In this document: piece after piece, positions 6,917 to 59,741 of the stretch
How the letters are laid out: the number at the start of each line of letters is the position of its first letter
Position numbering within the stretch: the first letter of the stretch is position 1
Assembly (NCBI RefSeq): GCF_018977255.1
Contig: NW_024704755.1
Location: forward strand, 15,686,001-15,750,000
DNA length: 64,000 nucleotides
Direction: 5' to 3'
Origin: Callorhinchus milii
Taxonomy: Eukaryota
Translations under genes and position numbers: made by a program
The notes under the pieces: generated by a model
The model's input: the letters and a program-made list of their open reading frames with translations, nothing else
The model's database searches: none
What the model was told of the DNA's origin: nothing

Positions 6917-7246
6917 CATAATAATAATAATAATAATAATAACAATAATAATCCTTGCATTTGATAAAGCGCTTTTCACGTCGAGAGGACGTCCCAAAGC
7001 GCTTCACAGAACACACTGTAAAGTGAGTTGACTGTATATTTGTGGGCGAACGCGGCAGCCAATTGCGCATAGCAATGTCCCACAAACAGTCGTAGATTTA
7101 TTATTGTTTGTGGTTTTGGAGGGATTATTATTAGGCTGTGTGTGGAGTAAGGAAACTTCTCCAAGGTTTCGCCCTCTGCCTGGAATTGAATTCAGGTCTC
7201 TCACTTGCAAAGCGAGTGCTCTAACCACTGAGCTACAGGACTCCAC
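6917..7246 (-). mobile_element. Full-length young SINE copy
   Basis: Reverse complement of the same head/core/(TTA)n consensus. Confidence 0.9.
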
Positions 7247-8957: not shown

Positions 8958-9141
8958 CTCATTACCTTTTGATTTATATTTCTCTGTATTCGTTTTCATC
9001 AGCTCTGTATTTTACTCAATCAGTGTTTGGATTAATTTCTGATGTTGTTGACGTCACTGCCTCACATTCACTTTAGCATCTGACACCCCTCATTACAGAC
9101 CAGCAGTGGGTTCAGGGTAATCTCAGACAGTGATCCGAACC

Positions 9142-13930: not shown

Positions 13931-13949
13931 TGATGAGGCTCTTGATGTG

Positions 13950-14430
13950 AGCCTGGCTGAGTGGTAGCACTCTCGCTCTGAGTCAGAAGGTTGTTGATTC
14001 AAGCCCCACTTCAGTACTTTAAATCACATAGTCTAAGCTGACACTCCAATGCAGTACTGGGGGTGTGTTGCATTGTCGGAGGAGAAGTCTTTGTAATCTA
14101 CGCATCTGATTTTTTTAATCTTATACAAGGTTCAGTACTATGAGATTCAGCTGTATAGAACTTGTCCCATCTGCCTGTTCAGGTGGACATTAAAGTTCCC
14201 TTGGCTCCAATTCAAAGAGAACTGAGTTCCTCGCAGTCTCCTGGTCAACAATCACCCAAATAAAATTGGTCACTCGCTCCATGGCTGTTTGTTGGACATT
14301 CCTGTGCGCAATCGGCTACCTTGTTTTATGCACAAAATTCAGTTACTCCACTTTACCATATATCCTGTGAAGCACTCGATGATATGCTAAACCGCTATGT
14401 CAAATGTGAGGATTATTATTATCATGAAGA
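13950..14430 (+). mobile_element. Older second SINE family (different tRNA-like head, Deu-type core)
   Basis: Head tggctgagtggtagcactctcgctctgagtcagaagg..ttcaagcccc. Related decayed copies at ~7715-8000, 14630-15060, 28680-29150 and 29770-29990. Confidence 0.65.
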
Positions 14431-16326: not shown

Positions 16327-17150
16327 ACAACAACAACAAGATTGCATTTATAAAGCGCCTTTCCCATCGGGAGGACGTCCCAAGGCGCTGGACAGTTGGG
16401 TCGGGACCCGAGCAGGGGGTAAATGGTCAGGGTGAGGGGAGGGGAGGGAGAGAGCGAGGAGGGGTTAGAGAGTCGAGAGGGGAGCTGAAGGCACGGTTGA
16501 AGAGAATGATCTTGAGACCGGCCTTGAAGAAGGAAAGGGAGGAAGCAAGGCGAAGGCACTGGGGGATGGAGTTCCAGAGCCTAGGGGCTGAGAGGCTGAA
16601 AGCCCGGCCACCGATGGTAGGGCGGTTAGGGCAGGAGATGTGGAGCAGACCGGAGCCAGAGGAACGGAGGGTACGGGCAGGTAAGTAGGGGGATAGTGGG
16701 TCAGAGAGGTAGGATGGAGCAAGGCCGTGAATGGCCTTGTAGGTGAGGATGAGGATCTTGAATTCGATCCTCTGGGGGATGGGGAGCCAGTGGAGGTGAG
16801 TGAGGGCGAGGGTGGGAGTGATGTGGTCCCGAAGCCTGGTGCGGGACAGTACACGAGCTGCAGAGTTTTGAATGAGCTGCAGCTTGTGGAGGGAGGTGCC
16901 GGGAAGGCCAGCGAGGAGAGAGTTCCCGTAGTCCAGCCTTGAGGTAATAAAGGCGTGGACCAGTGTTTCAGCCACGTAAGGGGTGAGGTAGTGCCGCAGT
17001 CTGGCGATGTTCCAGAGGTGGTGGAAGGTGGTGCCAGTTGTGGCGCGGATGTGGGGAAGAAAGGACAGCTCAGGGTCGAACAGAACACCGAGGTTCCTAA
17101 TTGGCTTTGAAAGGTGGAGAGTGCAGCCTTGGATGCTGATGCTGGATGCT
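16327..17150 (-). mobile_element. L2-clade LINE, 5'-truncated, RT C-terminus plus 3'UTR and (TTG)n tail
   Basis: ORF 16427-16975: AETLVHAFITSRLDYGNSLLAGLP..LHWLP..GGRAFS..PRLWNS. Confidence 0.92.
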
Positions 17151-17652
17151 GATACTTAGTCCCTCCCATAGCCTTCTTTTTCCTTGTCCCTCATATTCAT
17201 ATCCAGCTTTCCCTTAAATGAACAAGAACAACAGCAAGATTAACTTGCACTTATGTCTTGCCCTCCACGCAGGGTAGCATCAGAATGCTTAACAGTGGCA
17301 GAGCCTGAGGTAGTGGATTGGAGAGTGAGGACGACAGAGAGGTAGGGAGTTGCCAGTGAGTGAAGGGATTTTATATGTTCCAGTACAATATGTTAGAAGA
17401 AATTGAGTTTGTATTAATAAACTTCAAAAATCATGCACCTTTGGTCCTGTGTCCATGTCAGCCTTGCCTCCTCAGTCAACCTTATGTACAGCTCCCTTGC
17501 TCAACAACCTTGCTCCCATCACAACTCAAATCCATTTTTATCCCCAAAATTTGGAAAATTTGAAGAACATCTTCAAATACCATGAGAAGAATGAGAAGAA
17601 TGGTGTGGGGGGTCTGTAAAACAAAAGTACAATTACATCTTGTAATTGAGTC

Positions 17653-17974
17653 GTGGAGTCCTGTAGCTCAGTGGTTAGAGCACTCGCTTTGCAAGCAAGA
17701 GACCCGAGTTCAATTCCAGGCAGAGAGCGAAACCTTGGGCAAGTTTCCTTACTCCACACACCTAATAATAATCCCTCCAAAACCAAAAACAATAATAAAT
17801 TCGTCATTTTCAATCTACGACTGTTTGTGGGACATTGCTGTGCGCAATTGGCTGCCGCGTTCGCCCACAAATATGCAGTCAATTCACTTTACAGTGTCTT
17901 CTGTGAAGCGCTTTGGGACGTCCTCCCGACGTGAAAAGCGCTATATCAAATGCAAGGATTATTATTATTATTAT
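17653..17974 (+). mobile_element. Full-length young SINE
   Basis: Matches the consensus from gtggagtcctgtagc to the (TTA)n tail. Confidence 0.9.
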
Positions 17975-19784: not shown

Positions 19785-22700
19785 ATGATGGCGAGTGTTA
19801 TTTTACAGACCCTGTCTTTCATAACGATAATTTTCAAAGGTTTGTGTTTAGAATTTTCTGAATATAAATGCAGTCATTTCAAGTGTTAATGAGTATTTTC
19901 CCTTCAGCCTCTTGCATTAGTAATGTAATCCTTACACTTTTAAGTCGTCGAGACATCTCAAAGCGCTTCACAGAAATTTTCTGCGAAGTGTAGTGCCTGT
20001 ATATTTGCCTCATGAAGAATGAGTTTATTGATGCAAAGTGAACTAACTATCTATTATGTACTGTGTGCCTTCCTTTGCTTTTGCTCTTTTTTATTGTTCC
20101 TTTCTCCCGCCTGTGAATCTTATGCATTGAGTGTTCAAATTTATTTCTGATAGTTATTGATGGTACTTTGATCGAAGTGGCACAACAACCCAAACACGGA
20201 ATTCCAAACATAGGTGCAAACATCACCTTCTATTGCATTTTTCCTGTCCGTCCAAACAACACACGCATAAAAGTGTACTGGTGGAAGCAGGGGGAGAGTG
20301 GATACCTGCAAACAAGAGCAGATAACAGGAAAATATTCGGTTTGGAAGATGGAGGGAACAGCTTCTTCCAGCTTTTGAATGTGAGTCCCCAGGACTCTGG
20401 TCTGTATTACTGTGCAGTAGCCCGTGAGGGAATAATAACAGGAAATGGATCTGGATCACATTTAACTGTATGCGGTAAGTGTGAATATTTGAAACATATT
20501 TAAACATTACACAAATAAATCAAACGAATGGCATGGAATGTTTTATTATTCTTATAAAATATTTAGGATACAATGAGTGGAGATTACAGTGGTGGAATAA
20601 ATTAAAGATGTAATGTAGTAAAATTCTTTAAAATAGTTATGCATCGCTGCCAATATTACTATGCTGTAGATGTTGAATGGTAATTTATTTATTCCGCACT
20701 AGTCGCTGTTATTCATGTTTAGCAGAATTTCTTGCAATGTAAGGACTTAGATCATGTTTTAAAAGTAAGTGATTTTTGACATTTAAGTAACTTTAATACT
20801 ATCTCCATAGATTCCTTAAATAAAATAACAGTCACAAACTCTTTATATGGCCTATTAAGAGTGGACAGAATGTATTTCCTACAGTGTTCTAGTTGTGATT
20901 GACTCTTGTGATTCCTTTGGCATTGATTCCCTTGGCATCGATTCCCTTGGTACGTCCTCCCGATGTGAAAGATGCTACACAAATATAATTTTATTGTTGA
21001 TATCCAGAATTTCAATCTGTAACTATAATACTGTCACTTTTCATTATTGATTTTGTTTCTCTTGGTCTCGAAGCAGAGAATAATTCATTTAGAATTGTAA
21101 AATCAATACAAATTACAGTCAGTCGCTTGAAAAGTGATTTTTTTCTTTCATGCTATCAGTGACAGTGATTAACAAATAATAATAATGATCCTTACATTTG
21201 TTATAACGCAGTTCACGTCCTCCCATCGTGAACTGCATTATATCAAATTTAAAAATCATTATTATTATTGCTATTATTATTGGGGTCCCCAAGTGCTTCA
21301 CAGTATACACTGTAAAGTAAATCGCTCAGATATATAACCCTCATATAACACTCATAGTCTCCGCTCCACCACAGGTGGCCTTTGGAATTCTCTCTCTCAA
21401 TCCCTCTGCCTTGCTCACTCATTCCCCCTTTCAGATCATGCCTGAAGACCTTTCTCTTCAATGGTGTTTACAGTCTTTCCCCCCATTCTTCACCCCCGGC
21501 TTAGTGTCAGCCTGCATTACTTTAGGCGCTTCAAGACCCCACCCCACGAGAAGGGCACTGCACAAATGTAAGTTGTTGTTGTACTGTAAATTGGAGTGAC
21601 TCTGTTTTGTGGACGAATATAAATCTGTTTTACGGATGAAGGGCGAGTAGCACCTTTAATTCTCCATTTATTTATTTCTATTGGAATTTCATCCATAACT
21701 GGTCTTTGCCATAAATCGATTGTGGCAGCAATAAATAGTAGCTTGTATTCAGCAATATAACTGAAAACTAAGTTATAAAGTAAACTAGAATCAAAGTTTT
21801 TTAAAGAAATGCATTGAATTCAAATCAGAATAAACTCCATTCGAAGCTAAGTTATGTGATTTTGTTCCATCATATTATTTACAGTTCCCCCAACACCACT
21901 GGAGATTTTCTCTGGCGATCCTGAAAGAGATCCATCTGTGTCTCTGACTCTTGTATGTAAAACGGCCGCATTTTACCCAGAGAATCTTCAGTTCAATTGG
22001 TATGAAAATGGCATCGAAATCACAAATGATATAATTACAAATGAACAACAGAATTCAGAGGGACTGTATGAAGCATCGAGCTCTGTGAAAATGAGACAGG
22101 ATATCAAAACCGGGACTGTTTATACCTGTGGGGTATTGCACCTCAGTCTCCGCACTGGAGGAACTGCCAACTACACAGTTGACCTTTCTGAAACAGGTGT
22201 GGTGCCAACTGTCAATTATAGTTAAGTACACCTTGACTTAGTATTTCAATTCATACCTCAAATTATAGTCATGAAAGTCACAAGCACTCCATGTTAAATA
22301 TATAAAAAAATTACTTTTAGTTGACAAGATTGGAACCGTGGGTATTGTGAGACACATTATTTTTATGCATGTAGAATAAACAATGAGATTCTAGCAACTG
22401 GTGACTATTTAAACAAGGTTACAAGATTGCAGGAGAAGTGCAGCTGAGGAAGACTCTTTTACGCATTTGATCGCATCCTTTCAAAACTGCTAACATATTA
22501 ACTTCCCAACATAACATTAAGCTGCTTTATATATCAATTAAAAGTAATGGGCTCAACCACCCTTTTGGTCACTTGTTCCAGTTCTTGATTTGAGAAACAA
22601 ATACTTTTTGGAAAAAGAAGGCAAAATATTGCAGATACTGGAAATCTGAAATAAAAACAGGAACACTCAACAGGTCAGGCAGCATCTATGGAGAGAGGAT

Positions 22701-32669: not shown

Positions 32670-32998
32670 GTGGAGTCCTGTAGCTCAATGGTTAGAGCAC
32701 TCGCTTTGCAAGCAAGAGACCTGAGTTCAATTCCAGGCAGAGGGCGAAACCTTGGGCAAGTTTCCTTACTCCACACAGAGCCTAATAATAATCCCTCCAA
32801 AAACCAAAAAACAATAATAAATTGGTCATTTTCAATCTATGACTGTTTGTGGGACATTGCTGTGCGCAATTGGCTGCCGCGTTCGCCCACAAATATACAG
32901 TCAATTCACTTTACAGTGTGTTCTGTAAAGCGCTTTGGGACGTCCTCCCGATGTGAAAAGCGCTATATCAAATGCAAGGATTATTATTATTATTATTA
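32670..32998 (+). mobile_element. Full-length young SINE
   Basis: Matches the consensus. Confidence 0.9.
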
Positions 32999-35461: not shown

Positions 35462-35990
35462 GTCATTGTTTGCAGGTATCCACCCTCTACCTACTTTCAC
35501 CAGCACGTTCTTAAACTCGATTTGGGTTGAGTGATAGGAACCATGCAGTGGGAGGTCATGATTGTACCTTTGATGACCTCTATGTGTTAGGGGAGTTTAG
35601 TCATTCTGATAAATATACCGTCAACAACTTTCAGAAATACATTCAATATAATTAAAACAAAAGACAGAGACATAGAAACAGAGGCTCGGTTCACTCAATG
35701 TAATAAATAAAAGATCATAAAATATTAATAACATTAATCTATGTTATTTTATAGCAAACTTGCGTAACATAATCACTCACCCAAGGAAATCTTCCCATAA
35801 AAGACAGATACTGTGATATAACATACACCAATATTCTGATCATTGTCTGACAAATCCTGAACTGTTGCTTGTGTGTGATAAAAGGTTGCAGATGTTTGAA
35901 TTGCGACAAGTCACAGTGACTTCCAGTCTTTGTACATTCAGGAGTTATATGTTTTGGTTGGGTGTGATTGCACAGAGGGTTGTCCAGTGA
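35462..35990 (-). pseudogene. psi2: inverted family pseudogene (promoter, ATG-less leader, 5' half of V exon)
   Basis: On the minus strand: promoter resembling gene C (tgcaatcacacccaaccaaaac..ctggaagt), leader ~35834-35781 with donor gtgagt, acceptor tttctgaaag, then from 35627 VVDGIFIRMTKLP*HIEVIKGTIMTSHCMVP..RTCW*K*VEGGYLQT. Confidence 0.8.
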
Positions 35991-40175: not shown

Positions 40176-40265
40176 TAAACGTCACTGCCTCACATTCATT
40201 TTTAGCATCTTGCACCCCTCAGTACAGACCAGCAGTGGGTTCAGGATAATCGCAGACAGTGATCC

Positions 40266-43200
40266 ATGGCGAGTGTTGTGTTTTACTGTTTCTCTCTCGT
40301 GGGGATGCTTTCCACAGGTAGGTATTTGGTTGAATTAAATAGATACTCGCAGTCGTTTTCATTTTTATACTGAACCAAGTGCTCTGGGGCACTACCCTGC
40401 GTGAGAGGCGTTATATAAATCCAAATTGTTGCAAACAAAGTTTTGTTGCTTTACTTGCATCTTTACCTCGTGCTTTAAATTTTCTCTGTATTCATTTTCA
40501 TCGGCTACATATTTTACTCAATCAGTGTTTGAATTTGTTTTGATAGTTGTTGACGGCATTTCGGTCCAAGTAACTCAACTCCCCAAACACACAACTGTAA
40601 TCAAAGGTGAAAGCATCACCTTCTATTGTGCCATTTCCTACTTTGAAGAAAACTCACGTACAAAAGTATACTGGTGGAAGCATGGGGAGAGGGAGTACCT
40701 GCAAACACGGCCAGATGCCAGGAAAATATTTGATATTGAAAAAGGAGGAAGCGGCTTCTTTCAGCTCCTGGATGTGAATCTTCAGGACTCTGGAGTTTAT
40801 CACTGCGCTCTGGCGTTGGAGGGAAAAATAGCAAAAAATGGAACTGGATCGAATTTAACTGTATGCGGTAAGTGTTAACCCTTCGCAGAACTGGATCATT
40901 GTTATCTTTACATATTACGCAAATATATCTAACGCACTATAATCTTAAGAGAATCAAAACTAGACTGAGAACTGCAGGTGTGTATGACATCTACATTGGG
41001 AAATTGTGCAGTATCTGAAAAGGAATGATGTTTCCTGGTTACCTAATTCTGGAGAGCAGAGGTTTGTTGTGTCCCCTGGAGTTTAATCAGATTTTAAAGC
41101 CACATACTTGCCAACCCCTTGAAATTTGAAAGCACAGTTTGGCTTCCTGCAATGCTGTGCAGGTAGGAAAAGCCCGACCGGTACCGGTTTGTCTTGAGGG
41201 TTAAACAGCAGATGAGTGGCAAGATTCCCACTCACCCCTTACTGCCACCCCCGCTCCAAAGAGGGTAACTATTTTGGCACTATAAACATGATAAACATGC
41301 AAGTAATCAATCCAAATCAAAGTACATTAATATCCGTTAGGTGTACACTGAAAGCAATTCGAACACAACTAGCCAAGTCACACAATTTAGAGTTCTTAAC
41401 ATCTCTGGAATGTCCATGGATAGGTGGGAACCAAGGAATTCACAGTTAAATATGAATACTTTTAAGCAGTTTGTGATGGGTTTCCACATTGATGACCGAA
41501 ACAGAATCCTTACTTTGGTGAAGATTGTCAATAGTAAATAGCAGTCGACTGTGTTTTAATGCCGCCTGCACCAGGTTTTTGCGATGAAGTTATTTACTTA
41601 AATGTGAACTACATTTATAAATAGTAATGTCGACTCATTACTTTTGGCAACTGCGATTGCTGGAGAGTAAAGAAAATGTTATTACGAGTAATTCATTAAA
41701 TACAAAATGTAGAAATCAGATCAAGTTGTCACAGAGAAATTAATCAGATATAAATCGGAATTAAATTTTCCTCAACTGAATAGAAATGGTGTAATTCTGC
41801 TCCATTATCTAACCCACAGTTCCACCAACACCACTGAAGATAATCCCAAGGTTTACTAAACGTAATGCATCGGTGTCTCTGACTCTTGTGTGTCAAACGG
41901 CTGAGTATTACCCGAAGAATCTCATCCTGACTTGGTATAACAGTGTCACCGAAATTACAACAGGAATAAATACCACTGAACAGCAGAATCCAGGGGATTG
42001 TATGTAACTTCCAGTTCTATGGAAGTGGCACAGCCCATCCTGAGGGGGGCTGTTTATACCTGTAAGGTGTCACACATCAGCCTCAAGGCTTCAGAAATTG
42101 CCGAATACAAGGTTCAACTTCCTGAACATTCTGAAAAAGGTAGCATGCCAGAAATCCTACTGTTAATTATAAGTGTCTTTTTCCATGATTAGTTAATTTA
42201 TCGCAAAGCTAATTGCTAAATATTTTTTAAAAATCAACTTTTAGTAAAAGGTATTAGAAATGTAGGCGTATGCGCATTATCTTCCTCGAAAAGTAATGCA
42301 AGAAGACTCATTAAAATATGAAAACTTGAAATCATCAATTTAATAACAGAATCTCTATTCTGGTGAAACCTGGAGTTAATTAAATTATACATTAGTTAAC
42401 AGGCCACAAACATCGTGTTGAGAAAATAAATGAACGTCATGCACCGTAATGTATCGCTTCTTTTTTGTATCTTGCCATTTTACCAGGGTTTGACTATTGG
42501 ATCGTTGGATATGCAGTGGCTGCACTGATTTTTCTAGTAGTTTTAATTATTATTGGGAAGCGATGCAAATGGATGAAATGGAGAGGTAAGAAATATCTGT
42601 TTTTATTGAAATTAAGTGTATTATTTCCATTTTAATTCAATGTTTCAATGAGTAAATGAGACATCCCCGGATTATGCAATGGGAAGAGAGGTTTGAAGAC
42701 TAAATGTCTGTGCAGTCCACTAATGATTATTAAATATTAATCAATTTCAGAATTTGTATTCATTCTAGTCCACACATTATTTTAAATTTCTGTCATAGAA
42801 ATTTAATACATATTTCATTAATTTAGTTTCATTAATTTTAGGCTCCCATAAAGAAATTAATGGATCGCACCGTTCTGGAGAACAGGTAACTTTATATAAC
42901 TTGTCTCAGCAGGTTTGTCACCTTGCAGAGATTGATGGAATAAATAGAGATTATTCCTTATAGATTTTATAACATTTTAACTCATTCTCCTTCGAGCATT
43001 TATACGTCCTCACTTTATAATTTGCGCACAATTATTGAGCACCACGTATAATATAGTGCATTTGCTAGCAGTATATATTATCAACTATAAGTATTGTAAA
43101 ATATTCTCAAGTGATTTTTAAAATATTTTAAACTAGGCAGCTGAAGTTCACTTGTTCATCGCAGTGTTACACTCAGTGTTTACGCAGTAGTGTGAAGTCC

Positions 43201-44974
43201 TGTAACCCTGTGGTCAGAGCACTCGACTCGCAAGGGAGAGACCTGGGTTCACTTCTCGGCAGGGCGAAATGTTGAGCAAATTTCCTTACTCCACATGCCT
43301 GTTTAGCTAACAGTAAGTAGGAACTCAGTTGTTAGTCGATTGGCGGATTGCTTTTTCGGGATAACAATCCTTAAAAAAAAATAATAATTTGGTCACTCAA
43401 TCCATGACTGCTCTTCACAATTGGCTGCTGCGTTTTGCCCACAAATATAGCGAATTCACTTCACAGTATATGCTGTGAAGCGATTTGAGACGTCTAGAGG
43501 TTATGAAAAGCACTATATCAAATGCAAAGATTATTATTAGTGTGTACAGAACTAAAGACAATGAACCAATCATGGAACTACGAGTTGCATTTTACAGACT
43601 GTGCAGGGAGCACACGATGAGATGGCTTATGTCACATTGGATTTGACAAGTTCCCAGAAATCTCCAAGACCTAAATATCAGGAGAGGACAGCGTACACCC
43701 AGGTGAGAAATACTAAATTGAGATATAATTCCTTCAGATCCTAAATCATGGGATTAGAAACTAGAATGAAACTCCAGTTGTTTAACATAATATTATTTCT
43801 GTGCTTCACGCTCCTCAAATCATCTAATTCTGGTTGAATCTTGGAATGCGAGTAAGGCAAATTATTTGACTATAGGAACATTACAGATGAATAATATATG
43901 TCCTTTGGGTACTTAGAAACTGCCTAATAACTGAGTTCCCTCTTCCCTAACATCCTCGTGGAATTTTATAGTAGCTACTATTAATCGTATCTACATGAAA
44001 AGGAGTTGGAATATTTAACTCCTAGTTTTTTTATTAACCAAGCAATGGAAAGGGAAAGCGGTGCTGGAAATTCTGAGTGCATTTATTTGGGAGATTTCTG
44101 AAGTCTGACAACATAATTAAATTAATTACATTTCCAAATATTTGCTTCCCAGACAAAGGGAGCAATTGGTAACAAGCCAACATATGCAGCTCGGGATTTA
44201 TCTGGCTCCAAGAAAATAGGAAAGACTAAACCTACCTCCAAGAGTACAGAATATGCCAAGGTAAGGGTCATCAACCCATGGAGCTAAGAGACAAGAAATG
44301 TTACAATACTACATATCGAAGCTGAAAATTGGTTAATATTGAGAGTCTTCCCTGCCATATATATTGGGTGTCACTTATGGGTACGCCAGTTATATGTTGG
44401 CGTCTCGTCATCACCTGCAGTTATTAGCAATTATTTATTACCTTAGGATTTTTCATTCCACTAAAAATCTGTCTGGTACATTCATATTTGACAAACCAGA
44501 ACCATTTTAATTAACAAAATTAATTGCCATCAACATCTTCATTATTGCAGCATGCGACTACCAGGATGGTAGAAGATGACCTAGATGTACCTTAGTCTTT
44601 TTTCTTATACCAATTCTAATGCTCCTGTGTTCAAAGTAATATCTTGTACCAATCTAATAATGTTTCTTAATCTGGATGATATCTTTATCACACGTTTCAT
44701 AAAAATTATGGCTGCCATATAACTAGAACAAAGACTACCAATGCAAATCTTATAAATGGTATAAATATTTGGCAGAAATGTGGCAGAGTTGCGTAAAGTG
44801 ACTTAAACAAAGAACTAACAGTATTCCGAAATTTCGTCCTTACAGGTCAAACAAGGGGTAAACAAGCTGACTTATGCTGCTCTGGATTTGGGTAGCTCAA
44901 AAAAAACAGGAATGCCTAAATTCAACAAGAATACAGAATATGCCGAGGTACAGATGAAAACAGCAGAGCAGTAG
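40266..44974 (+). CDS. Gene D: V(J)-C1-TM inhibitory receptor with three ITIM/ITSM modules (~392 aa if the C1 frameshift is corrected)
   Basis: Exons 40266-40317, 40547-40867, 41820-42139, 42487-42585, 42842-42885, 43598-43702, 44153-44260, 44846-44974, all GT-AG. The C1 exon is 320 nt (G4 at 41993-41996 versus G5 in B), giving TAA at 42005-42007. Confidence 0.75.
40547..40867 (+). CDS. Gene D V-set exon (318/321 nt identical to gene B)
   Basis: Direct comparison gives three substitutions, one of them nonsynonymous (T/I near the N-terminus). Confidence 0.92.
41820..42139 (+). CDS. Gene D C1-set exon (1-bp deletion as sequenced)
   Basis: Near-identical to the B C1 exon. ccaggggattg versus ccagggggattg in B. 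Confidence 0.8.
42487..42585 (+). CDS. Gene D transmembrane exon (uncharged)
   Basis: GFDYWIVGYAVAALIFLVVLIIIGKRCKWMKWR, flanked by ttttaccag and gtaag. 99 nt. Confidence 0.85.
42842..42885 (+). CDS. Gene D 44-nt juxtamembrane exon (phase 1 to 0)
   Basis: GSHKEINGSHRSGEQ|gtaac. Same length as the gene E equivalent at 58495-58538. Confidence 0.75.
43192..43539 (+). mobile_element. SINE, long subfamily, in a gene D intron
   Basis: Head, extra segment, core and tail all visible. Confidence 0.8.
43598..43702 (+). CDS. Gene D cytoplasmic module 1
   Basis: TVQGAHDEMAYVTLDLTSSQKSPRPKYQERTAYTQ|gtgaga. Phase 0-0. Confidence 0.8.
44153..44260 (+). CDS. Gene D cytoplasmic module 2
   Basis: TKGAIGNKPTYAARDLSGSKKIGKTKPTSKSTEYAK|gtaagg. 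Phase 0-0. Confidence 0.8.
44846..44974 (+). CDS. Gene D last exon (ITIM LTYAAL plus ITSM TEYAEV)
   Basis: VKQGVNKLTYAALDLGSSKKTGMPKFNKNTEYAEVQMKTAEQ*, acceptor ccttacag. Confidence 0.85.
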   Translation, partial: VKQGVNKLTYAALDLGSSKKTGMPKFNKNTEYAEVQMKTAEQ

Positions 44975-46984
44975 CCAAGGTCACCACCAGGGAATCGGGA
45001 ACCATATAATGTTACTATAATTCGTTGCATATATTGTTCACAGATCTCTGTCATATAGAAGAATCTATGTTCTTTGTTACTAACCAATTAGTATCTCTCA
45101 AGCACAACTCTGGCTATTAATGATTTTACTTAACTTAAGCAATTATTTTGCAAGAAATCATTGATGGTTAAATCTATAACCATAGTTACTTACTAAAAAA
45201 AATCATCTTAATGCTTAGCAGTAGGTTTCCCCTCCTCTACACATGCAACCTCGTGTGACCCTACTGCCCCGGCTACTGCCTCTGCTCAGCAAACACGGGC
45301 CTCCTTCATGTCCCTCATCCGATCAGCAAAAGTATCAAAAGTTTTCAGTGAATTACTTAGAAATAAATCTATCAATATAAAACTTTACCCAAATTACAAA
45401 AGTTTGGAATAGTGGTGTAAACAGTTTTTATAACATTTTAATTAAGAATACTTATGAAATATAAATTGTATTGATATCTCATTTACTCATTTTATCTCTT
45501 TGGTATTAATGAAGTGACACTTGATATGCGTTATCATACGGTCTGATTAAGAATACATAGTGCCCTTCATCTACCACTGTGAAAAGGTTAACGTGTGGGC
45601 ATTCAAACTGATCAAGTATCTACAAAAATTTACCTAATAGGAAGTTACTAAACTTTTGATTGCATTAATTTTTCAGTATTTTAAAGCGATTTTTATATTG
45701 TTAGATCAGAAGTGTTGTGCTCTCAAAATGAACAGAGTATCCTGCTTATGAATTTAAAACTATTATTTGACAGTACGAACAATGGTTGTGGATCACTGTA
45801 TCGTGAGTGGCTGTAGATAGCTATTATATGTAATTTCTGTATTGATGCAACAATCGATATGAACTACAAGACCGATTTCTTTCTGTAAATTTTTAAATGC
45901 GTCTTGGTCCACTATCGCTAAATCCTGGAAGTATAGTTGGTCCAATTCGAGTTTGCATTGTCTGTTAATTTGTTCTCTATTTCTTCACAATCAAATTGCA
46001 GATCTAGTTTCTAATTACATTTTCTGGAATATTGTTTTTCGAAGTGGGATATACACATTTCATTATCAGTTAAGAATAGTAGCATTATTTATTTGGGCCC
46101 TTATCCACATTCATTGGCAAAATAAAACAGATAGAGTGAAAACATATTGAATTATGTCATATTTCTAAATCGTTATTATAGTAAGACATCTTTACCTATT
46201 ATTATTGTAATCAATATTTTTCAAATACTCCCATGTTGCAGTATTATATGCTTGGAGACAAGTCATGGGACAATCTCACAAATAGCATCAATTGTTCCAA
46301 GATCAACGGTATGGAGGAGGAAAGCATGAGAGATGGTTTGAAATATATATAGCGCCCTTCTTCGATATTGTTTTAGAGTGCTTCATACAGCAATCAGCCG
46401 CCGAGGAAGGGAACAGGTGACCATAAGCACGGATTGAGGTGGGATTTAAACATGTAGTGAGGAGTGGATGGGGCTGAGGAAGGGAAAGGGAGGGACAGTT
46501 ACAGAGGTTAGGTGTGTAATGACACGGATAATGGTGCAGAGTTTGCAGGGTCGCATGTACAAGTTAATCCAGTGGAAAGGGCTATCAATAGAGTGCCACA
46601 GATGATTGGGACAGATAATTGGGCATTGTGGGGTTTGGTGTGAGTCGATATGTGGTGGTGGAGTTTGGAATAAGATGCGTCCTGTGATGGTGAAACCAGG
46701 GAAGCTGGCGAAGAGCACATTAGAAAATTTAAAACAGTACAATATAAATTTACCATTAATAGAGCACCTTTCATGTCGGGAAGATGTCCTAAAGCATTCA
46801 AAGTACTTGGTTGGTACCCAAGCTGTGGGTGGGAGCAAGGGGGCTGGGGAAAGATGAATAACGACACAGTTAACAGGTCTTGAGCTGAGGGAAGAAACGA
46901 GTCAGAGTGACTGAGTTTCACAGATTCAATTATGAGGGGATTCGTTGGGGTGAACAAGAAGAAACGATTTCCACTGGCGGGTGG

Positions 46985-49166: not shown

Positions 49167-49493
49167 ATAATAATAATAATAATAATCCTTGCATTTGATA
49201 TAGCGCTTTTCACGTCGGGAGGACATCCCAAAGCGCTTCACAGAATATACTGTAAAGTGAGTTGACTGTATATTTGTGGGCGAACGCGGCAGCCAATTGC
49301 GCACAGCAATGTCCCACAAACAGTCATAGATTGAAAATGACCAATTTAATTATTATTTTTGTTTTTTGGAGGGATTATTATTAGGTGTGTGGAGTAAGGA
49401 AACTTGCCCAAGGTTTCGCCCTGTGCCTGGAATTGAACTCAGGTCTCTCGCTTGCAAAGCGAGTGCTCTAACCACTGAGCTACAGGACTCCAC
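49167..49493 (-). mobile_element. Full-length young SINE
   Basis: Matches the consensus on the minus strand. Confidence 0.9.
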
Positions 49494-49884
49494 TATCTGC
49501 AAAAAGGGTATTGAGAAGATAGAGATGAAGGCAATCAGAACGGTTGATAGGATAGAGGGACTGCATTAAGAGGATTGGTTAAGTAAACTAGGCATGTTCA
49601 CACTGGAAAATAGAAAGTTGAGATGATTTCTGTTTTTAAGATTCTAAAGGGAATAGATAATGTAGAGTAGACCATGACATGCCGTTTCATCGTGTCCGGA
49701 ATCGTAGAACCAGAGGACATGACCTGTGCTTGAAGTGGAGGTAAATTCAAAACCAATCTATGGAAACACTATTTCAGCGAGTGAATGGTAAATCTAAGGA
49801 ACTGGCTTCCTTGGAAGAAGCTGCAAGCAGAAAGTGTCAATTCATTCAAATGCAAATTAGATAGATAATATGTTGGGATACGAT

Positions 49885-51075: not shown

Positions 51076-51565
51076 TATTATGATATAATAAATGTATATT
51101 TATAATAATATTTTGAGACATGATAAATAGTAAGTGTAGTATGCTTGGAAGAACCGGACAACTTTTAATCTTAGGTTACCAAAACTTTCCACTCTGTTAT
51201 AGACTAATCCATACAGAATTAATTTCAATCTTCATCTCCATTGTTGTAGAACGCCACTGCCAAAGTGGTGGAAGGTGAACTAGATGGGCCCTAGTCTTTT
51301 TTTCATCTAGCAATTCATATGTTCCTATGTGCTTTTCTTCAAAGGGTAATTTGTAAAACACTTCGAAAATGTAGCTACAGGGAGAAATCATAGAATTATA
51401 CAGTAGAGAAGGAGGCCATTTGGCCCATTTCTCTTTGAAAAGAGAAACAACCAACAGAAAATTGTTCAGCAGAGCAGAAATGTACAGTATAAAAAGGTAA
51501 CCATATTAGAAAAACATAAAAACAAAGAGATCCCCCCCAAAAAAAAAATCCAGAGGGGGAAATTC

Positions 51566-52255
51566 TGGAGAGAGGTGGGAGAGAGTGGGGTGCTGGTTTG
51601 GTGGGGGGAGAGTGGGGAGGGTTGGGGGGAGAAAAGGGGGACAGAGAGGAGGAGGGAGACACTCTCTCCTTCTCTCCCCCCTCCCCCTCTCTCACACACA
51701 CACCACACACAGTCTCTCCATCAATTACTCTGTCACTCCACTTCTCACACTGTCTCACACTCTCTCTTCCCTCTCACACTCCACCTCCCCCTCTCAACCA
51801 TTCTCTCCCGGCTCTCTTTCTCTCTCACACCCTCTTTCAATTATTCTCTCTCACTCCCCTTCTCTCCCACACACACTATCTCTATCCCCTCTCAAACTCT
51901 CAATCACTCTCTCTCAATCTCCCCACCTCTCTCTCTGTTTCTCTCCCCTTCTCCCTCACATTGACTCCCTCACATTGGCTCCCTCCCCCTCACACTCTCC
52001 CACTCTACCATTCTCTCTCACTCAATCTCTCTCTGTTCCTCTCTCACTCACAGTCTCTCTCCCTCACTCCCCCTTTCTTACCTCTCTTTCACACGCTTAC
52101 TGTCTCCTCTCTGTCTACCCCCTCATACCTCTCTTACTCCCGCCTTCTCTCCCACCTCTCTCTCTCTCCCCCTCAATCTCCCCCTCTCTCTGTTTCTCTC
52201 ACCCTTCTCCCTTACAATCACTCCCTCCACCTCACATTGTCCAACTCTCCCACTA
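51566..52255. repeat. Low-complexity tract: ~95-bp purine/G-rich run followed by a ~600-bp CT/CA-rich pyrimidine run
   Basis: Composition visible directly. It explains the long S/L/P/H-rich ORFs in the ORF track. Confidence 0.9.
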
Positions 52256-52299
52256 TAAATAATTCTCTGTGGGGGGAAGCTCCTGATCTTCCTCTCTGC

Positions 52300-52765
52300 C
52301 CCCTTGCTAATTGCCTTAAATTGATGCACTCTTGTCACTGATGCAATGTTGCGGAGATGGTGGTAGGCAGTACCAGTCATGGCGCGGATGTGGGGGAGAA
52401 AGGACAGTTCAGGGTCAAACAAGACACTCAAGATCCTGACTGGCTGGGTGAGGTTGAGTGTGCAACCGTGGATGCTGATGCTGTGGAGGCGCTGTGAAAG
52501 GTAGGACCTGAACCAGTCAAGGACTGAACCTTGAAGGTTGAGGTGGGAGGAGAGGCGGTGGAGGAGGATTGAATGGTCCACAGAGACAAAGGTGGCAGAG
52601 AGGTCGAGGAAGACGAGGATGCAAAGGGAACCCTCGTCGCACATGGTCAGGATGTCGTTTGTGACCTTGATCAGAGCAGTTTCCGTGCTGGGGCAGCACG
52701 GAAATCTGACTGGAGGGGTGCACAGAAGGAGTTGAAGGAGAGGAAAGAGCAAAGCTGGGAGGTGA
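52300..52765 (-). mobile_element. L2 RT fragment
   Basis: STETALIKVTNDIL..LVFLDLSATF..VDHSILLHRL..GSVLDWFRSYLSQR. Confidence 0.88.
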
Positions 52766-52809
52766 TGCTTCTCTCAAGGACAAATGAATAAATGTTATAT
52801 GAATGAAGT

Positions 52810-53893: not shown

Positions 53894-56800
53894 ATGACAA
53901 TGTTGGCGAGTCTTGTGTTTCAGGGTGCATGTCTATTGGTATTGATTTCCACAGGTGTGTATTCCTTCTTTACCCCAATTTGCCAAAAAGGGACATAGAT
54001 TTCATAATTTTTTTGTGGATAGAATAAATCTGTGTCTTGCTCTGTGAATTACTTTGTCTCTTGCTGTAATTTTTTTTCTAATTAGCATTTGAATTTATTT
54101 CTGATAGTTGTTGACGATAGACTGATCAGAGTGACCCAACAGCCCGACCATGTGGAGGCAATTAGAGGCACTAACGTTACCTTCCATTGTATGTTTCCTG
54201 ATGCCCAATCCAACTCGCGTATAAAAGTGTACTGGTGGAAGCTGGAAGACAATGGAAACCTGCAAGTGCAGCCGGATAAAAGAAAACTGTTTGGGTTCGA
54301 CAGTGACCAAAAGAGCTTTTTTCAGCTCCTAAATGTGAGTTTCCAGGACTCTGGTGTGTATCAGTGTGTTCTCTCGCTTCAGGGGCAAATAGCAGGCAGT
54401 GGACGTGGATCACATCTGGTTGTACTCGGTAAGTACGGTTTCAGTGGAGAACGGAAATATTCCAAATTAGATATTGTGATAAAAATTCTGAAAAAGTGTG
54501 GAGGGTGTTTTCATTATTTTAAGAATATGAAACAATTATTTTAATTTTTTATCCTTTAAAATATATCCTCCTGGGGGCAGGTGGGCTCTGCTCGGAGCTG
54601 AACTAGCTCCAGCATGAAATGTTTAGCAATAGAATATCTGAATCAAGATAAACCTCTGCAATGGTATCGGTAGTCTGGCTCTTGAGCCCGACGGGTCTGC
54701 AGTATTCTGGGGCACTGCTGATAATAATAATATTAATAATTCTTGCATTTGATATAGTGATTTTCACATCTTCTACACGTCTCAAAGCGCTTCACAGAAT
54801 ATGCTGTCAAGTGAATTGACTGTATATTTGTGGGCGAAACGAGGCAACCAATTGCACACAGCAGTGTCCCACAAACAGTCGTGGATTGAAAATGACCAAT
54901 TTATTATTGTTTTTGCCTTTGGAGGCATTATGATCGCCCAGCCTGCCTGACTCATCAGTTTATCGGAAGTTAAATTGTAGATGTGTTCATACAAGATATC
55001 TTTGTGATGTGATTCGAGGGATGTTAACCTACCAAAGACCAATATCAAATGGAAGGATTTTTAAAAAAAAATTATTTAGACCATTTCAAACTCCAAATTG
55101 TTGGTGTTTAAATATAATTTCAGTCATAAATTTAATACACTTAGTTAAATATATTTTCAGTAATGATCTATTTCTTCATTTTACTGAGGAGGAATGCAAT
55201 AGAGCATATCAGCACTGGCTATATTGCTGTTGTAATCGTCTACATGGCTGGAACATTATTTTCTTCTCGGGAATTTAAACCTATAACTAGGAAAAATCAA
55301 GTGTTTTTTTGCTCAAGTTCCATGTAGGGAAAAAAATGAAAAGATTCAATTTGTATTAATGGGGAAACGCAATTGGAATTGTGGAAAACAATATTTTATT
55401 GAGTGGAGATTGAAACATTCGATGACAATGTGTGCTAGCTTTTCATGGTACTTATTTACTTTTGGGGGATTTGTAGTGATAAAGAATGTTTCCGATGACA
55501 CTTTTATAATTGTTATTGATGGCGAACAAATCAATGTTAGACCTAAAGATTTTTTTAAATCCAAAGCAAATAAACCAGAATCAAAATGTTGTGACTGGAA
55601 TGGTGTACAAATCGTAAAAGTTTAATCTCCACCAACTGAATGTAGGTTTGTTATTCTGCTGTACTGTTTGTTCTACAGTTCCTCCAACTCCATTGAAGAT
55701 TTTCTCCAAAGATCCTAAAATAGGTTCACCAGCGCCTCTGACTCTTGTGTGTGAAACAACAGCATTTTATCCTGAGAATCTTAACTTCACTTGGTATAAA
55801 AATGGCACCAAAATTACATCTGGAATAAATATCACTAAACAGCAGAATGCAGAGGGATTGTATGAAGCTTCAAGCTTTGTGGAAGAGAACAAGCCTATCC
55901 AAAGTGGGGTTGATTATATCTGTGAGGTTTCTCACATCAGCCTTCGGATTCCAGAAATTGCCAACTACACAGTTCAGTGTTCTAAAACAGGTAGGACGCC
56001 AACAACCTTACTGTCAATTAATCTTTATTTTTTCACAAGAATATTTCCCACTATTAATTACAGCAAATTATGTAACATTCACTTACTGTTTGCAGGCAAT
56101 CATATATACGTTTTTCTATCAAATACACTTTGCAATATATCCCCTGAAGCATTGTAAGACTTTCTCCTGACGTGAAAGGCACGATATTCAATATTCACAT
56201 TACTCAATATTCACGATATTTATTATTATTTTCTATTATGTCGCTTTACTTGTGCCTCAACACCAACTAATTATATTTGAAAAAGCGTCTTTCATAATCA
56301 TTGGCATGTTCTGCTTGCAACACTAAATGGAGTGAAGTAATGCTGTTTTACTTTTACGTTTGTATTGTCGTTATAGGAAATACGTCCCATCATATACTAA
56401 TATATGGAAGTGCAGGATTGACATTTCTTGTGCTTTTAATCATTGGAATAGCATGTCGATTAACGAAAAGTAAAGGTAAGACACATTCATGTTTTATTCA
56501 GGCTTAAATTTTAGTTTTATGTTAATGTAATACTTCAATGAGTAAATTAATGAATCACTTGGTAGCATGGCCATTAAAGCGGTTTAAAAGATAAAGAATA
56601 AAGCAATGCAATATTTTTTACTGAAATTTACATTGAATTTAGAAATGCAAAACACCAAACTGGTGAATTTAATTAGATGTTTGTTTACAGCAGAAGTTTA
56701 GGCTTGAGAGCAAATATCTCAAGTCTTCTCATATCTATAATTATCAGCAGAAATGTGAGTATAGAAATTTTAGAACTGATGTCAAACATGTCTTGTGTAT

Positions 56801-59741
56801 GGAGTCCTGTAGCTCAGTGGTTAAAAGCACTCGCTTTGCAAGCGAGAGACCTGAGTTCAATTCCCGGCAGAGGGCGAAACCTTGGGCAAGTTTCCTTACT
56901 CCACACGCCTAATAATAATCCCTCCAAAAAACCCAAACAATAATAAATTAGTCATTTTCAATCCACGACTGTTTGTGGGACATTGCTGTGCGCAATTGGC
57001 TGCCGCGTTCACCCACAAACATACAGTCAATTCACTTTACAGTGTGTTCTGTGAAGCGCTTTGGGACGTCCTCCCGACGTGAAAAGCCCTATATCAAATG
57101 CAAGGATTATTATTATTATTATGGTAGCATATATCAACATGGTGGGTGAAAATATTGCGGAATATTCCAGCAAAATGTGACATTAAAGATTTTTTTTATT
57201 AAAAAAACCTTTACCAAGACACAAAGAGGAGGAAACCAGGTTGAAAGAATAGACAGACTGCGATCATGATCGGTTTAAGTCATCTTTCAGCAGCAGCTCA
57301 GAAGGAACAAAATACTTTCTCTCATTGTTCTCTTCATGGTCTGAATGCAGGTTCAGCTTGTGGCACATGACATGTGTCCAAATAGTTCTCTTTCTTGATT
57401 CGGAGCACTGGTATATAGAATAGATTTATTTTGGGGTCATTTGTGGATTTTTTAGTTGCAGGAAGGGAGCTCTCCAGCAGAGAGAAGATTGATGATGGGC
57501 AAGTTTATTTACCAATGCCCGTTAGACTACACAACAACAACTTGCACTTATATAGCGCCCTCCATGCAAGGTAGAGTCTCAGAGCGCTTAACAGTGGCAG
57601 AGCCTGACTCTGAGTAGAAGGTGGGGGAGATAGTCATAAGCACGGTCGAAGAGGAAGGTTTTCAGCAGGACTTGAAAAAGGGGAGAGGGGGAGCAAGGTG
57701 GAGGGACTGAGGGAGAGTGTTCCAGAGGTTCAGGGCGTAATGGCTGAAAGCGCGACCTCCGATGCTGGGGCGGAGGATGCGAGGGATGAGCAGGAGACCA
57801 GTACCAGTCAAACAGAAACACCAGGTGGTGGATTGTCGAGTGAGGAAGTCGGAGAGGTAGGAAGCTGCCCGAGAGTGAAGGGATTTGAACATGAGTGTGA
57901 GGATCCTGATTAAGTAATTTGGTTTTGAGTAAGTCAAGTGCGAATCGTTGCCACTAATTTCCCAACTCAAACTTTGAAGTGCCTAAGCCTCCGCTATGGT
58001 CAAACTGCACCTAATGCTTTCCAGCATCTCTTCAGGGAAAGAGGGCAAGAGTTTACATACAAAATACCGTCATTCCACTTTGCAATGAATCCTCTGAAGC
58101 ACTTTGTGATATCCTCCTGACGTTAAAGGAAAAAACTGTTTTTTCATTCCAGCTGCAGGAAAATTTCAATGTGTAGGTGATGTACGTAGGTGGAACTCGC
58201 AGGCTGATTTGGATAATTTTTGGGTTGGTGATGTGTTTCTCCACATGTCAGATACCAGGCTCACCATAAAATAAGATGCCTAGGTTGTTTTCAATTATTG
58301 TACATTTAATGTATGCTGATCATGAAGATTATGCTGCCCTTATCCTGTAGTAGTAAGCTTTTATATTTTATAAATTGTCCCAGGAAGCACTTGGGCATTC
58401 AAACCATTTGTATTCATTCTACCTGTTTTCTTGGGTATATGGACGACATGGAAATTGAATAAACATTTCACTTTTTCAATTTGTTTCATTTCAGGTTTAC
58501 ACAGAAAGCTGAATGGATGTGACATTTGTGGAGATCAGGTAAAGTACAGAATTAATTAGAGAAGATGTTTTCATGTTACAATGGGGTATGATCATCTGTG
58601 TTATAATGTCATCACAATATTTTGAACAGAAACTGGATATTCTTACCATTGTTAACATCGAATGCTGCATTTATTCTCTTCCATTTCTTATAATTCTTTG
58701 CCCCTTCACTGTTACGTTCAAATGTTTTCTATAAGCTATTCATATGCTTAATATATAGCACATGGTGCAATGCAGCACTGTTGCATAAATCTGTGTAACA
58801 CAATGCAAGTGATATGTTAAATATGTGAAATATAGCAGCTAATCTTCATTTCTATTATCCAGCTTTCTGCATTGCTTTACCAGCAGTGGAGAACAGTGAA
58901 TACAAGGAACCAACCAAGTAACCTGATGTTGTGTTTTGCAGAAAGACCATGAAACAATGTATGAGACAGTGGGATATGTCCCATCTGATTTGAATAGTTC
59001 AAACAAGACCTCGAGAAATATATATCCACAGGAAATGCCAGTATGTGCCAAGGTATACAAAATCCTGATACAGAGCCATTATAACTAATATGATATCTTG
59101 CTATATTAAATACAATTGCACTGACATTTATTCTTTAGGGTAAGCTTGTTTGTGTAATGCGATAGTTTTCCTCCTTCTATATTTCATCCTCTCCTCAGGT
59201 GCTTGTCTGGACTCGGTTACGTTTGCAAAGTAGTGTCCAAATAGTCCAAATAGTTATTCCTCGTGTGGCAGCCTCGCCAGTGAATGTAGCAAAATATGTG
59301 ATGCTGGAGAGATCACCAATGGAACGTGTCCACAGCGAGAATAACACACCACTCCCCAGGGAATTAGCACTGACCACAAACTAAGAGATACCAAGTCTAA
59401 TTGCATTGATCCCCGCCAACTGTAATCGCTGGCTTTATATGTCTGAGTTCAGCATTAAGTGATGCTTTACCAGATGAGAAACAGGATCTGAAGATTCAAA
59501 TAGTTACTTTTGGAGATTTCTAAATGCTGACGAAATGAATTAGTAACTGAAATCTCAACCATTACCTTTACAGACCAAACAAGTGGCAGACGGTAACGTG
59601 CTGACGTATGCAAATTTGAACCTGTCTGGCTCCAAAACAAAGGGAAAGGGAAATCCGAAATGCAGTGACACAAAAACAGAGTATGCCCAGATACACGTGA
59701 GAAACCATAGAGCAGCAGAACAGACAAGGAATCAACATTAG
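53894..59741 (+). CDS. Gene E: intact V(J)-C1-TM inhibitory receptor, ~371 aa
   Basis: Exons 53894-53954, 54108-54428, 55679-55990, 56377-56475, 58495-58538, 58942-59052, 59574-59741. 1116 nt in frame. Uncharged TM. Tail motifs TMYETV, LTYANL, TEYAQI. Confidence 0.82.
54108..54428 (+). CDS. Gene E V-set exon
   Basis: 321 nt. VTQQPD..VTFHC..KVYWWK..QDSGVYQC..GSGRGSHLVVL|gtaagt. Confidence 0.92.
54721..54930 (-). mobile_element. 5'-truncated SINE in the gene E V-C1 intron
   Basis: Core and tail. Confidence 0.8.
55679..55990 (+). CDS. Gene E C1-set exon
   Basis: 312 nt. LTLVCETTAFYPENLNFTWYKNG..YICEVSHISL..TVQCSKT. Confidence 0.92.
56377..56475 (+). CDS. Gene E transmembrane exon (uncharged)
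   Basis: GNTSHHILIYGSAGLTFLVLLIIGIACRLTKSK|gtaag. 99 nt, as in D. Confidence 0.85.
56798..57121 (+). mobile_element. Full-length young SINE in a gene E intron
   Basis: Matches the consensus. Confidence 0.9.
57531..57925 (-). mobile_element. L2 3' fragment in a gene E intron
   Basis: GGRAFS..LWNTLPQSL.. followed by the 3' tail. Confidence 0.8.
58495..58538 (+). CDS. Gene E 44-nt juxtamembrane exon
   Basis: GLHRKLNGCDICGDQ|gtaaag. Homologous to D 42842-42885. Confidence 0.75.
58942..59052 (+). CDS. Gene E cytoplasmic module
   Basis: Acceptor gtgttttgcag. KDHETMYETVGYVPSDLNSSNKTSRNIYPQEMPVCAK|gtatac. 111 nt, phase 0-0, homologous to the D modules. Confidence 0.65.
59574..59741 (+). CDS. Gene E last exon (ITIM LTYANL plus ITSM TEYAQI)
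   Basis: Acceptor acctttacag. TKQVADGNVLTYANLNLSGSKTKGKGNPKCSDTKTEYAQIHVRNHRAAEQTRNQH*. Confidence 0.85.
   Translation, partial: TKQVADGNVLTYANLNLSGSKTKGKGNPKCSDTKTEYAQIHVRNHRAAEQTRNQH

Follow-up and report, generated by a model that had tools for sequence, protein, structure and literature searches.

How does a receptor tail come to hold three copies of one paired-tyrosine unit, each on an exon of its own, and does the position of the splice sites turn these units into a set of switches? The question is raised by gene D (LOC103185890), an immunoglobulin (Ig) superfamily gene of the chimaera Callorhinchus milii, whose three tail exons lie at 43598-44974 of the stretch analysed here. This stretch, hereafter the window, covers 64,000 nucleotides (nt) of contig NW_024704755.1 in RefSeq assembly GCF_018977255.1 (positions 15,686,001 to 15,750,000 of the forward strand), and all coordinates are counted from its first letter. 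Gene D is probably a member of a SIRP-alpha-like cluster that encodes an inhibitory receptor docking SHP phosphatases, with a tail of serial cassettes that originated by duplication of a terminal exon, and with an old intron placed directly past the second residue after the distal tyrosine (Y+2). Existing annotation already covers the gene and its exons. The evolutionary reading given by an earlier, first-pass annotation of this DNA is largely right, except that the architecture is old and family-wide, while for its proposal of splice-tunable SHP/SAP docking in gene D the sequence evidence points against it.

Three homologous phase-0 exons are found in 43598-44974, with the boundaries, frames and motifs that the first-pass annotation had described. 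Module 1 (TVQGAHDEMAYVTLDLTSSQKSPRPKYQERTAYTQ; 105 nt, 43598-43702) follows the acceptor ttttacag, reads ..MAYVTLDLTSSQK..TAYTQ, and is cut at the donor CAG/GTGAGA at 43703, where the slash marks the end of the exon. Module 2 (TKGAIGNKPTYAARDLSGSKKIGKTKPTSKSTEYAK; 108 nt, 44153-44260) follows the acceptor ttcccag, reads ..PTYAARDLSGSKK..TEYAK, and is cut at AAG/GTAAGG at 44261. Both donors lie directly past Y+2. Module 3 is the terminal coding exon (VKQGVNKLTYAALDLGSSKKTGMPKFNKNTEYAEVQMKTAEQ and a stop; 129 nt including the TAG stop, 44846-44974); it follows the acceptor ccttacag and reads VKQG..LTYAALDLGSSKK..TEYAEVQMKTAEQ up to the stop. All three are on the + strand. Each module, about 35 codons long, has a proximal tyrosine in xxYxxL-DL and, 22-23 residues on, a distal tyrosine in TxYxx.

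The upstream cytoplasmic exon, c1, turns phase 1 into phase 0 and the modules are all phase 0, so that every combination of modules stays in frame; modules 1 and 2 are symmetrical (105 and 108 nt, phase 0-0), and skipping them would keep the frame. The last exon reads GAG GTA CAG, and its Val codon (GTA, 44948-44950) aligns in register with the GTA of the module-2 donor (44261-44263). The peptides that read-through of the two internal donors would add, VRNTKLRYNSFRS and VRVINPWS, are exactly as the first-pass annotation gave them, stops included. However, the GT of a phase-0 donor always reads as a Val codon (GTN). With the donor past Y+2 at phase 0, a valine on read-through is thus automatic, which lowers the weight of the coincidence.

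The modules resemble one another far beyond chance. Modules 2 and 3 share about 75% DNA identity within the exon, and their local alignment, which is confined to the exon, scores 71 as compared with 21.5 ± 2.4 in shuffles. In the DNA alignment of the three units no similarity was detected in the introns flanking the modules, since it stops at the exon edges, and none was detectable at the DNA level between module 1 and module 3. At the protein level, tblastn searches within the window gave E = 1e-6 for module 2 against module 3 and 2e-5 for module 1 against module 3.

The individual motifs differ in how well they fit the known consensus sequences. For the proximal tyrosines, the immunoreceptor tyrosine-based inhibitory motif (ITIM) consensus, (S/I/V/L)xYxx(I/V/L), is matched by LTYAAL of module 3; MAYVTL of module 1 has M at -2, and PTYAAR of module 2 fails at both -2 and +3. 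The change to YAAR had already been noted, and it reflects CGG where module 3 has CTG. For the distal tyrosines, the immunoreceptor tyrosine-based switch motif (ITSM) consensus, TxYxx(V/I), is matched by TEYAEV of module 3. Because Y+3 is supplied by the opening codon of the following exon (T after module 1, V after module 2), module 2 matches it only across the junction (TEYAK/V), and the distal site of module 1, TAYTQ/T, falls outside it. The forms TAYTQV, TEYAKV and TEYAEV, made by read-through or by joining to module 3, all fit. The names 'ITSM' and SAP/EAT-2 binding are labels here, taken from the consensus only.

The other exons of gene D lie upstream on the same strand. A leader exon (MASVVFYCFSLVGMLST; 40266-40317, donor CAG/gtaggt, phase 1) is followed by a V-set Ig exon of 321 nt (40547-40867, phase 1-1), which is recognised by Pfam as V-set (E = 4e-8) and Ig_3 (E = 3e-8), and by a C1-set Ig exon of 320 nt (41820-42139), in which a G-run near 41993-41996 is one base short. 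These are followed by a transmembrane exon of 99 nt (..IVGYAVAALIFLVVLIIIGKRCKWMKWR; 42487-42585, phase 1-1) and by c1 itself (GSHKEINGSHRSGEQ; 44 nt, 42842-42885, phase 1 to 0, donor CAG/gtaact), which has a homologue in the 44-nt exon at 58495-58538 of the neighbouring gene E. AG and GT are canonical at every exon boundary of gene D. The first AATAAA 3' of the stop, at 45362-45367 on the + strand, is on sequence alone a candidate poly(A) signal of the full-length mRNA.

Database products were searched for with a hypothetical C1-skipped splice form of gene D as the probe, which avoids reading across the stop in C1. Three products are found: XP_007902823.1 (392 amino acids), XP_007902823.2 (201 amino acids, LOC103185890), and UniRef A0A4W3HMH6 (304 amino acids). 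The spliced tail, that is the transmembrane segment, c1 and modules 1, 2 and 3, is contained letter for letter in both RefSeq versions, and the leader with the V domain, as well as both pieces of C1, are contained exactly in XP_007902823.1. The three tail exons are therefore already annotated RefSeq exons that are joined in series.

The age of this arrangement can be judged from relatives. Genomic loci of five of them (L001-L005) were fetched and their tail exons mapped, and the donor position, which the first-pass annotation had wished to see compared among paralogues and other species, is past Y+2 both in paralogues and in the sevengill shark Heptranchias. In the Callorhinchus paralogue L002 both internal modules are cut there (TVYAQ/gtatat and TVYAQ/gtataa), as is module 1 of a second Callorhinchus paralogue, L004 (TVYAK/gtacag). 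Gene E has kept the position and lost the tyrosine (PVCAK/gtatac). Heptranchias L001 reads TVYAQ/gtaggg and module 1 of L005 reads TIYSE/gtacag, both with the donor past Y+2, and the spliced junction T[VI]Y[AS][QE]/TK[QH] occurs in about 20 distinct cartilaginous-fish proteins. Since Callorhinchus and Heptranchias share the donor position, the arrangement predates the chimaera/shark split, and the sequences compared indicate an old, family-wide layout. The idea that it is peculiar to this gene, or that it was recently recruited, is not supported. Likewise, the module-1 motif TAYTQ-T, which had been described as broken, does fall outside the consensus, but it is the conserved state of the first module in the family and not a sign of damage. 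No account of shark SIRP-like tails, or of a donor placed at Y+3, turned up in literature searches.

Some of these relatives show further peculiarities. In the internal module of gene E (58942-59052) the distal tyrosine has become TGT (..PVCAK), and its donor, AAG/gtatac, is weak (score -0.6 on the matrix described below). The last exon of L002 (~16700-16820) opens T-K-stop and has Cys for the proximal Tyr, and that of L004 (~13931-14070) carries a frameshift that puts its distal motif, ..NAVYTEIQVRKN, out of frame. In Heterodontus francisci, the tail of the protein P0018 (XP_067906074.1, isoform X4) contains a two-module block repeated exactly in tandem, for a total of four modules or more, which suggests a very recent duplication of an exon block.

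Given that the layout is shared, the next question is where the internal modules came from. When modules were scored against sets of first modules and of terminal modules, module 1 was of the first type (88 versus 50), while modules 2 and 3 were of the terminal type (72 versus 45 and 83 versus 53, terminal versus first set). In L002, the extra module copies the first type. Because module 2 scores as terminal, an exon of the terminal type appears to have become internal in gene D. Terminal exons of the family read Y-x-x-[I/L/V]-[Q/H]-[V/M]-[R/K].., and often hold CAG GTG AGA or CAG GTG AAA at Y+4/Y+5, which amounts to a latent consensus donor. In-frame latent 5' splice sites of this kind are found at Y+5 in the terminal exons of gene A (279-287, CAG GTG AAA), L004 (~14050, CAG GTG AGA) and gene E (59694-59702, CAC GTG AGA). 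In module 2 of L004 and L005 the Y+5 Val is a working donor (..IEYTAVQ/GTGAGAAAT, that is CAG/GTGAGA, and ..AVYAQAQ/GTGAGG, respectively), and the YxxV/A motif lies wholly within the exon. Gene D differs in that the donor of its module 2 is the Y+3 Val codon.

Introns may also retain traces of former coding sequence. The intron after module 1 of L004 starts GTA CAG CTG AAA ATA, as compared with GTA CAG ATG AAA ACA in the coding sequence of module 3. When eight internal modules were compared with seven terminal exons, positions +7 to +21 of the introns agreed with the terminal-exon coding sequence, in register, at 5.45 of 15 positions, as opposed to 3.96 ± 0.26 in shifted controls, none of which (0 of 56) reaches the observed value. 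As the sequences compared are related, these traces are supportive and short of proof.

The probable course of events is as follows. Tandem duplication of a terminal exon ending in ..Y-A-[Q/E/K]-[V/I/L]-[Q/H]-[V/M]-[R/K].. would have produced a multi-module tail, in which MAG GTR codons serve as a latent 5' splice site and an in-frame Val (Y+3 in gene D, Y+5 in others) becomes the donor of the upstream copy. Such recruitment would be easy and recurrent, because the codons of Y-x-[Q/E/K]-V (xAG GTx) already make up most of a 5' splice site. The proposal that duplicated terminal exons were recruited through an in-frame Val donor thus finds support in the module typing, the intron-start traces and the Y+5 donors, although not as a gene-specific or recent event. 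The comparison of relatives supports recruitment as a family-level process that would go far back in the case of module 1 and be more recent in that of module 2.

What does the tail do? The closest named homologues of gene D are 'tyrosine-protein phosphatase non-receptor type substrate 1-like' proteins of Callorhinchus, Heptranchias, Heterodontus and Mustelus. The layout of one V and one C1 domain is the rule among cartilaginous-fish relatives; gene D has a single C1-set exon, and in the paralogous gene E this domain is recognised by Pfam with E = 3e-13. In the PDB, the top match other than antibodies is SIRP-alpha (2wng, V plus C1, residues 24-216). XP_007902823.1 carries the RefSeq name 'tapasin-related protein-like'; this identity was rejected, as TAPBPR matches the generic Ig part only, and more weakly than SIRP-alpha does.

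The tail itself points in the same direction. A profile built from seven tails was searched against 1.84 billion representative proteins and gave 66 matches, most of them cartilaginous-fish proteins with one to four or more modules. It also matched bat SIRP-alpha (3.9e-7), a SIRP-alpha-like protein of 502 amino acids (5.9e-6) and a lungfish relative. In BLASTP, the tail matches bat SIRP-alpha with E = 6e-5, modules 2 and 3 pairing with its two tyrosine pairs. A search with the tail of the relative P0001 alone returned two proteins only, at a length at which tails cannot reach significance in the 5.8-billion database. In SIRP-alpha, the corresponding tyrosines are known to serve as SHP-1/SHP-2 sites. 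As in SIRP-alpha, the tail most likely docks SHP-1/SHP-2 through paired phosphotyrosines 22-23 residues apart. In this scheme the default product would carry all three modules and act as an inhibitory receptor whose tyrosine pairs, once phosphorylated, bind the tandem SH2 domains of SHP-1/SHP-2; module 2 would have a disabled proximal tyrosine (PTYAAR), and the distal site of module 1 would be the family-typical, non-consensus T-x-Y-x-x-T.

Whether splicing can alter this default depends on the strength of the sites and on the products seen. Donors were scored with a simple matrix of approximate vertebrate frequencies. Those of modules 1 and 2 score 7.5 and 7.3, the highest in gene D and within the top 1% of GT sites in the window, whereas the in-register GTA of module 3 (GAG/gtacag) is weak as a donor (-0.04). 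The codon that opens the terminal-type exon is V in module 3 and L in P0001; every other exon of this type begins with T. V or L at this place means that the junction after an internalised TEYAx module restores YxxV/L; two cases are too few to call selection.

A tail-less product has been recorded. In A0A4W3HMH6 the c1 donor is read through (..SGEQ/VTLYNLSQQVCHLAEIDGINRDYSL and a stop, an ending of 25 residues), and the whole tail is lost. The read-through segment (42886-42963, + strand) has an AATAAA inside it at 42939, and the product resembles a receptor isoform that loses its tail through intronic polyadenylation. The paralogue P0006 is represented by a comparable tail-less form. Mustelus (L003) also has a poly(A) signal near the c1-type donor; in L002 and L004 the signal is more distant, and gene E and L005 have none. 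In a further paralogue, three proteins derived from Ensembl (A0A4W3H4Z2 and two more) read through the module-1 donor (..ERTVYTQ/VYPRNTKSK..), and read-through that completes the motif may thus occur elsewhere in the family.

The state of the C1 exon in this assembly is relevant to whether gene D makes a receptor at all. Compared with the 96%-identical copy in gene B, its G-run (~41993-41996) lacks one base, and the frame meets a TAA a few codons later. The older XP_007902823.1 reads on across the site (..NPGGLYVTSS..), implying one more base, and XP_007902823.2 begins only past the break (MEVAQP..).

The origin of the modules could also be read in reverse. A phase-0 intron past Y+2 would then be ancestral, the extra modules would be duplicates of internal exons, and the terminal ..V-Q/R.. 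tails would have arisen by read-through of a donor. The similarity between intron starts and terminal tails is symmetrical as to direction, and module 2 of L002 clearly duplicates an internal first-type module together with its donor. However, the SIRP-alpha tails of tetrapods and lungfish end in ..EYASVQVQRK or ..EYATVKKK, with ..TEYASIQ.. internally; they show the terminal pattern of sharks, Y-x-x-[VI]-Q-V, which suggests that the coding form is the older one. In addition, two different Val codons act as donors in different genes, which fits repeated recruitment. We therefore consider the reverse direction unlikely. Several points nevertheless weigh against an inhibitory SIRP-alpha-like receptor whose tail grew by terminal-exon duplication. 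The direction from terminal to internal is read from residual similarity among sequences that are related and not independent, and from the tetrapod tails (..EYASVQVQRK), and it is ambiguous which Val, Y+3 or Y+5, gave rise to the module-1 donor, GTG AGA AAT being closer to the Y+5 VRN codons. The serial joining of the modules comes from gene-prediction models (RefSeq Gnomon), the docking of SHP-1/SHP-2 is deduced from SIRP-alpha homology and motif spacing, and the frameshifted C1 exon leaves the copy as assembled unable to make the full receptor.

This last point raises the possibility that the window copy is a pseudogene, the frameshift being real and the tail exons recent relics without a product. 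The 320-nt C1 exon with its in-frame TAA soon after the shortened G-run is compatible with this, as are the cut of XP_007902823.2 to 201 amino acids starting past the break and the presence of other decayed pieces in the cluster (the V relics at 5224-5462 and 35467-35610, and the tail-less gene B). On the other hand, the older RefSeq protein, which derives from another assembly, is uninterrupted at this site, the discrepancy amounts to one base within a homopolymer run, as is typical of assembly error or polymorphism, and the remaining exons, the splice sites and the 161-codon reading frame of the tail are all intact. Because everything else in gene D is intact, a homopolymer error or polymorphism is more likely than a dead gene, and pseudogene status appears quite improbable. 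For genome annotation, this means that a one-base discrepancy in the assembly has shortened the current RefSeq protein of LOC103185890. It is also tempting to speculate, with the first-pass annotation, that the modules form a splice-tunable set, in which skipping (1 to 3) or donor read-through shifts Y+3 between T and V and toggles individual SHP/SAP sites. All module combinations are in frame, and the V that opens module 3 (L in P0001) means that both 2-to-3 and 1-to-3 joins yield YxxV; databases also hold read-through endings at the module-1 donor in the paralogue, and the tail-less forms of gene D and P0006. Yet both donors are near-consensus and the strongest of the gene, and the pyrimidine tracts at both acceptors are good. 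The stretch from the module-2 read-through stop to module 3 contains neither AATAAA nor ATTAAA, a single ATTAAA lies about 370 nt past the module-1 read-through stop, and a retained intron would put the stop upstream of a splice junction. None of the gene D products, namely the two RefSeq versions, which both have all three modules, and the tail-less form, lacks a single module, and the conserved T junction argues for a functional form and not an off state. A tunable set is thus not supported, and we regard it as very doubtful. The stronger form of the idea is equally improbable: that the last residue of the docking motif is deliberately split over the junction, so that exon choice or read-through turns TxYxxT into TxYxxV (ITSM/ITIM-type), with selection on the first codon downstream. 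If true, it would be a motif-level splicing switch for the choice of SH2 partner in cartilaginous-fish SIRP-like receptors.

Gene D is not alone in the window. The window is AT-rich vertebrate DNA with a tandem cluster of Ig-superfamily genes on the + strand, whose exons were located by searching translated open frames back against the window. Gene A is represented by its last exon alone (138-326), which is identical to the C-terminus of UniRef A0A4W3HMK7 (A0A4W3HMK7_CALMI, Callorhinchus milii). Gene B (V 9442-9744, C1 11772-12071) and gene C (V 20171-20473, C1 21884-22180) are followed by gene D (40266-44974) and gene E (54108-59741), all on the + strand. Two V-exon relics of the same family with in-frame stops lie at 5224-5462 (+) and 35467-35610 (-). 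Complete tail modules number five in the window: three in gene D and one each in the last exons of genes A and E. A module search of the window found no tail exons of genes B and C. Gene B (9051-12165) duplicates, at 96% identity, the leader, V and C1 portion of gene D (40179-42210). Its intron content differs, and the window shows no transmembrane or tail exons for it, so that gene B is a truncated copy or else encodes a secreted V-C1 form.

Apart from members of the cluster, the window holds only repeats. A tRNA-derived short interspersed nuclear element (SINE) of about 320 bp with an (ATT)n tail is present in at least ten copies, the youngest of which are 94-96% alike; they include 4739-5055, 6931-7248, 8565-8896, 17652-17974, 32670-32998, 49167-49494, 56794-57122 and others. 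One copy, a partial one at ~43150-43560, sits shortly before module 1. The window further contains retroelement open frames resembling reverse transcriptase, together with a CT-rich low-complexity stretch (16430-17190 (-), 52126-52773 (-) and 51400-52340). Between 43400 and 45100, both strands otherwise gave only short chance open reading frames and no Rfam match.

Among known systems, mammalian SIRP-alpha (PTPNS1/SHPS-1) is the closest. Like gene D, it has an N-terminal V-set domain followed by C1-set, a single transmembrane segment, and a paired-tyrosine tail (xTYAxL ... xEYAx[VI]) with a spacing of 22-26 residues. It differs in having two C1 domains, where gene D has one. The shark family, in turn, has an extra first-type module (VAYVxLDL...ERTVYAQ) upstream, and uses one exon per module with a donor inside or just past the distal motif. 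Mouse SIRP-alpha has eight exons, of which 6-8 are cytoplasmic (PMC12324903). In bat SIRP-alpha, isoforms X1 and X2 differ by VQSS right after ..EITQ, which corresponds to alternative use of a phase-0 donor where the shark gene has that of c1; a phase-0 junction ..Q/GT ahead of the tyrosines is thus common to both. All four bat tyrosines lie downstream of the VQSS point, in one uninterrupted stretch in both isoforms. Together with the mouse gene, these isoforms suggest that in mammals the last exon holds both tyrosine pairs, in which case a separate exon for each module would be a feature of cartilaginous fish.

Other receptors also spread tyrosine motifs over short exons and have grown by exon duplication, as in the cytoplasmic mini-exons of PECAM-1 and FCRL and the two-exon immunoreceptor tyrosine-based activation motifs of CD3 and FcR-gamma. 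For none of these do we know of a description of a 5' splice site at the Y+3 codon. The family described here would offer an exon-by-exon record of the growth of an inhibitory receptor tail. No new sequence is needed for a duplicated terminal exon to join the transcript, since the codons of Y-x-[Q/E/K]-V (MAG GTR) are a near-consensus 5' splice site, and the family appears to show this recruitment more than once, by means of two different Val codons. The SIRP-alpha-type paired-tyrosine tail is older than the split between cartilaginous and bony vertebrates, and a non-consensus T-x-Y-x-x-T site is conserved in sharks and chimaeras. This site sets the family apart from SLAM-family receptors, whose ITSM consensus is TxYxx(V/I) (as quoted in PMC5856374): the conserved spliced form here is TxYxxT, and there is no homology to SLAM receptors. 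A parallel for a splicing-dependent tail is CEACAM. In the long and short tails of CEACAM1 and in equine CEACAM paralogues, small cytoplasmic exons or alternative donors decide whether an ITIM or ITSM is present (PMC5856374; PMC2490704). Both systems are Ig-superfamily inhibitory receptors with motifs on small cytoplasmic exons, and they differ in that the CEACAM switch is a frame change or the loss of a whole motif, documented by cDNA, while gene D has symmetrical phase-0 copies and a motif that spans the junction.

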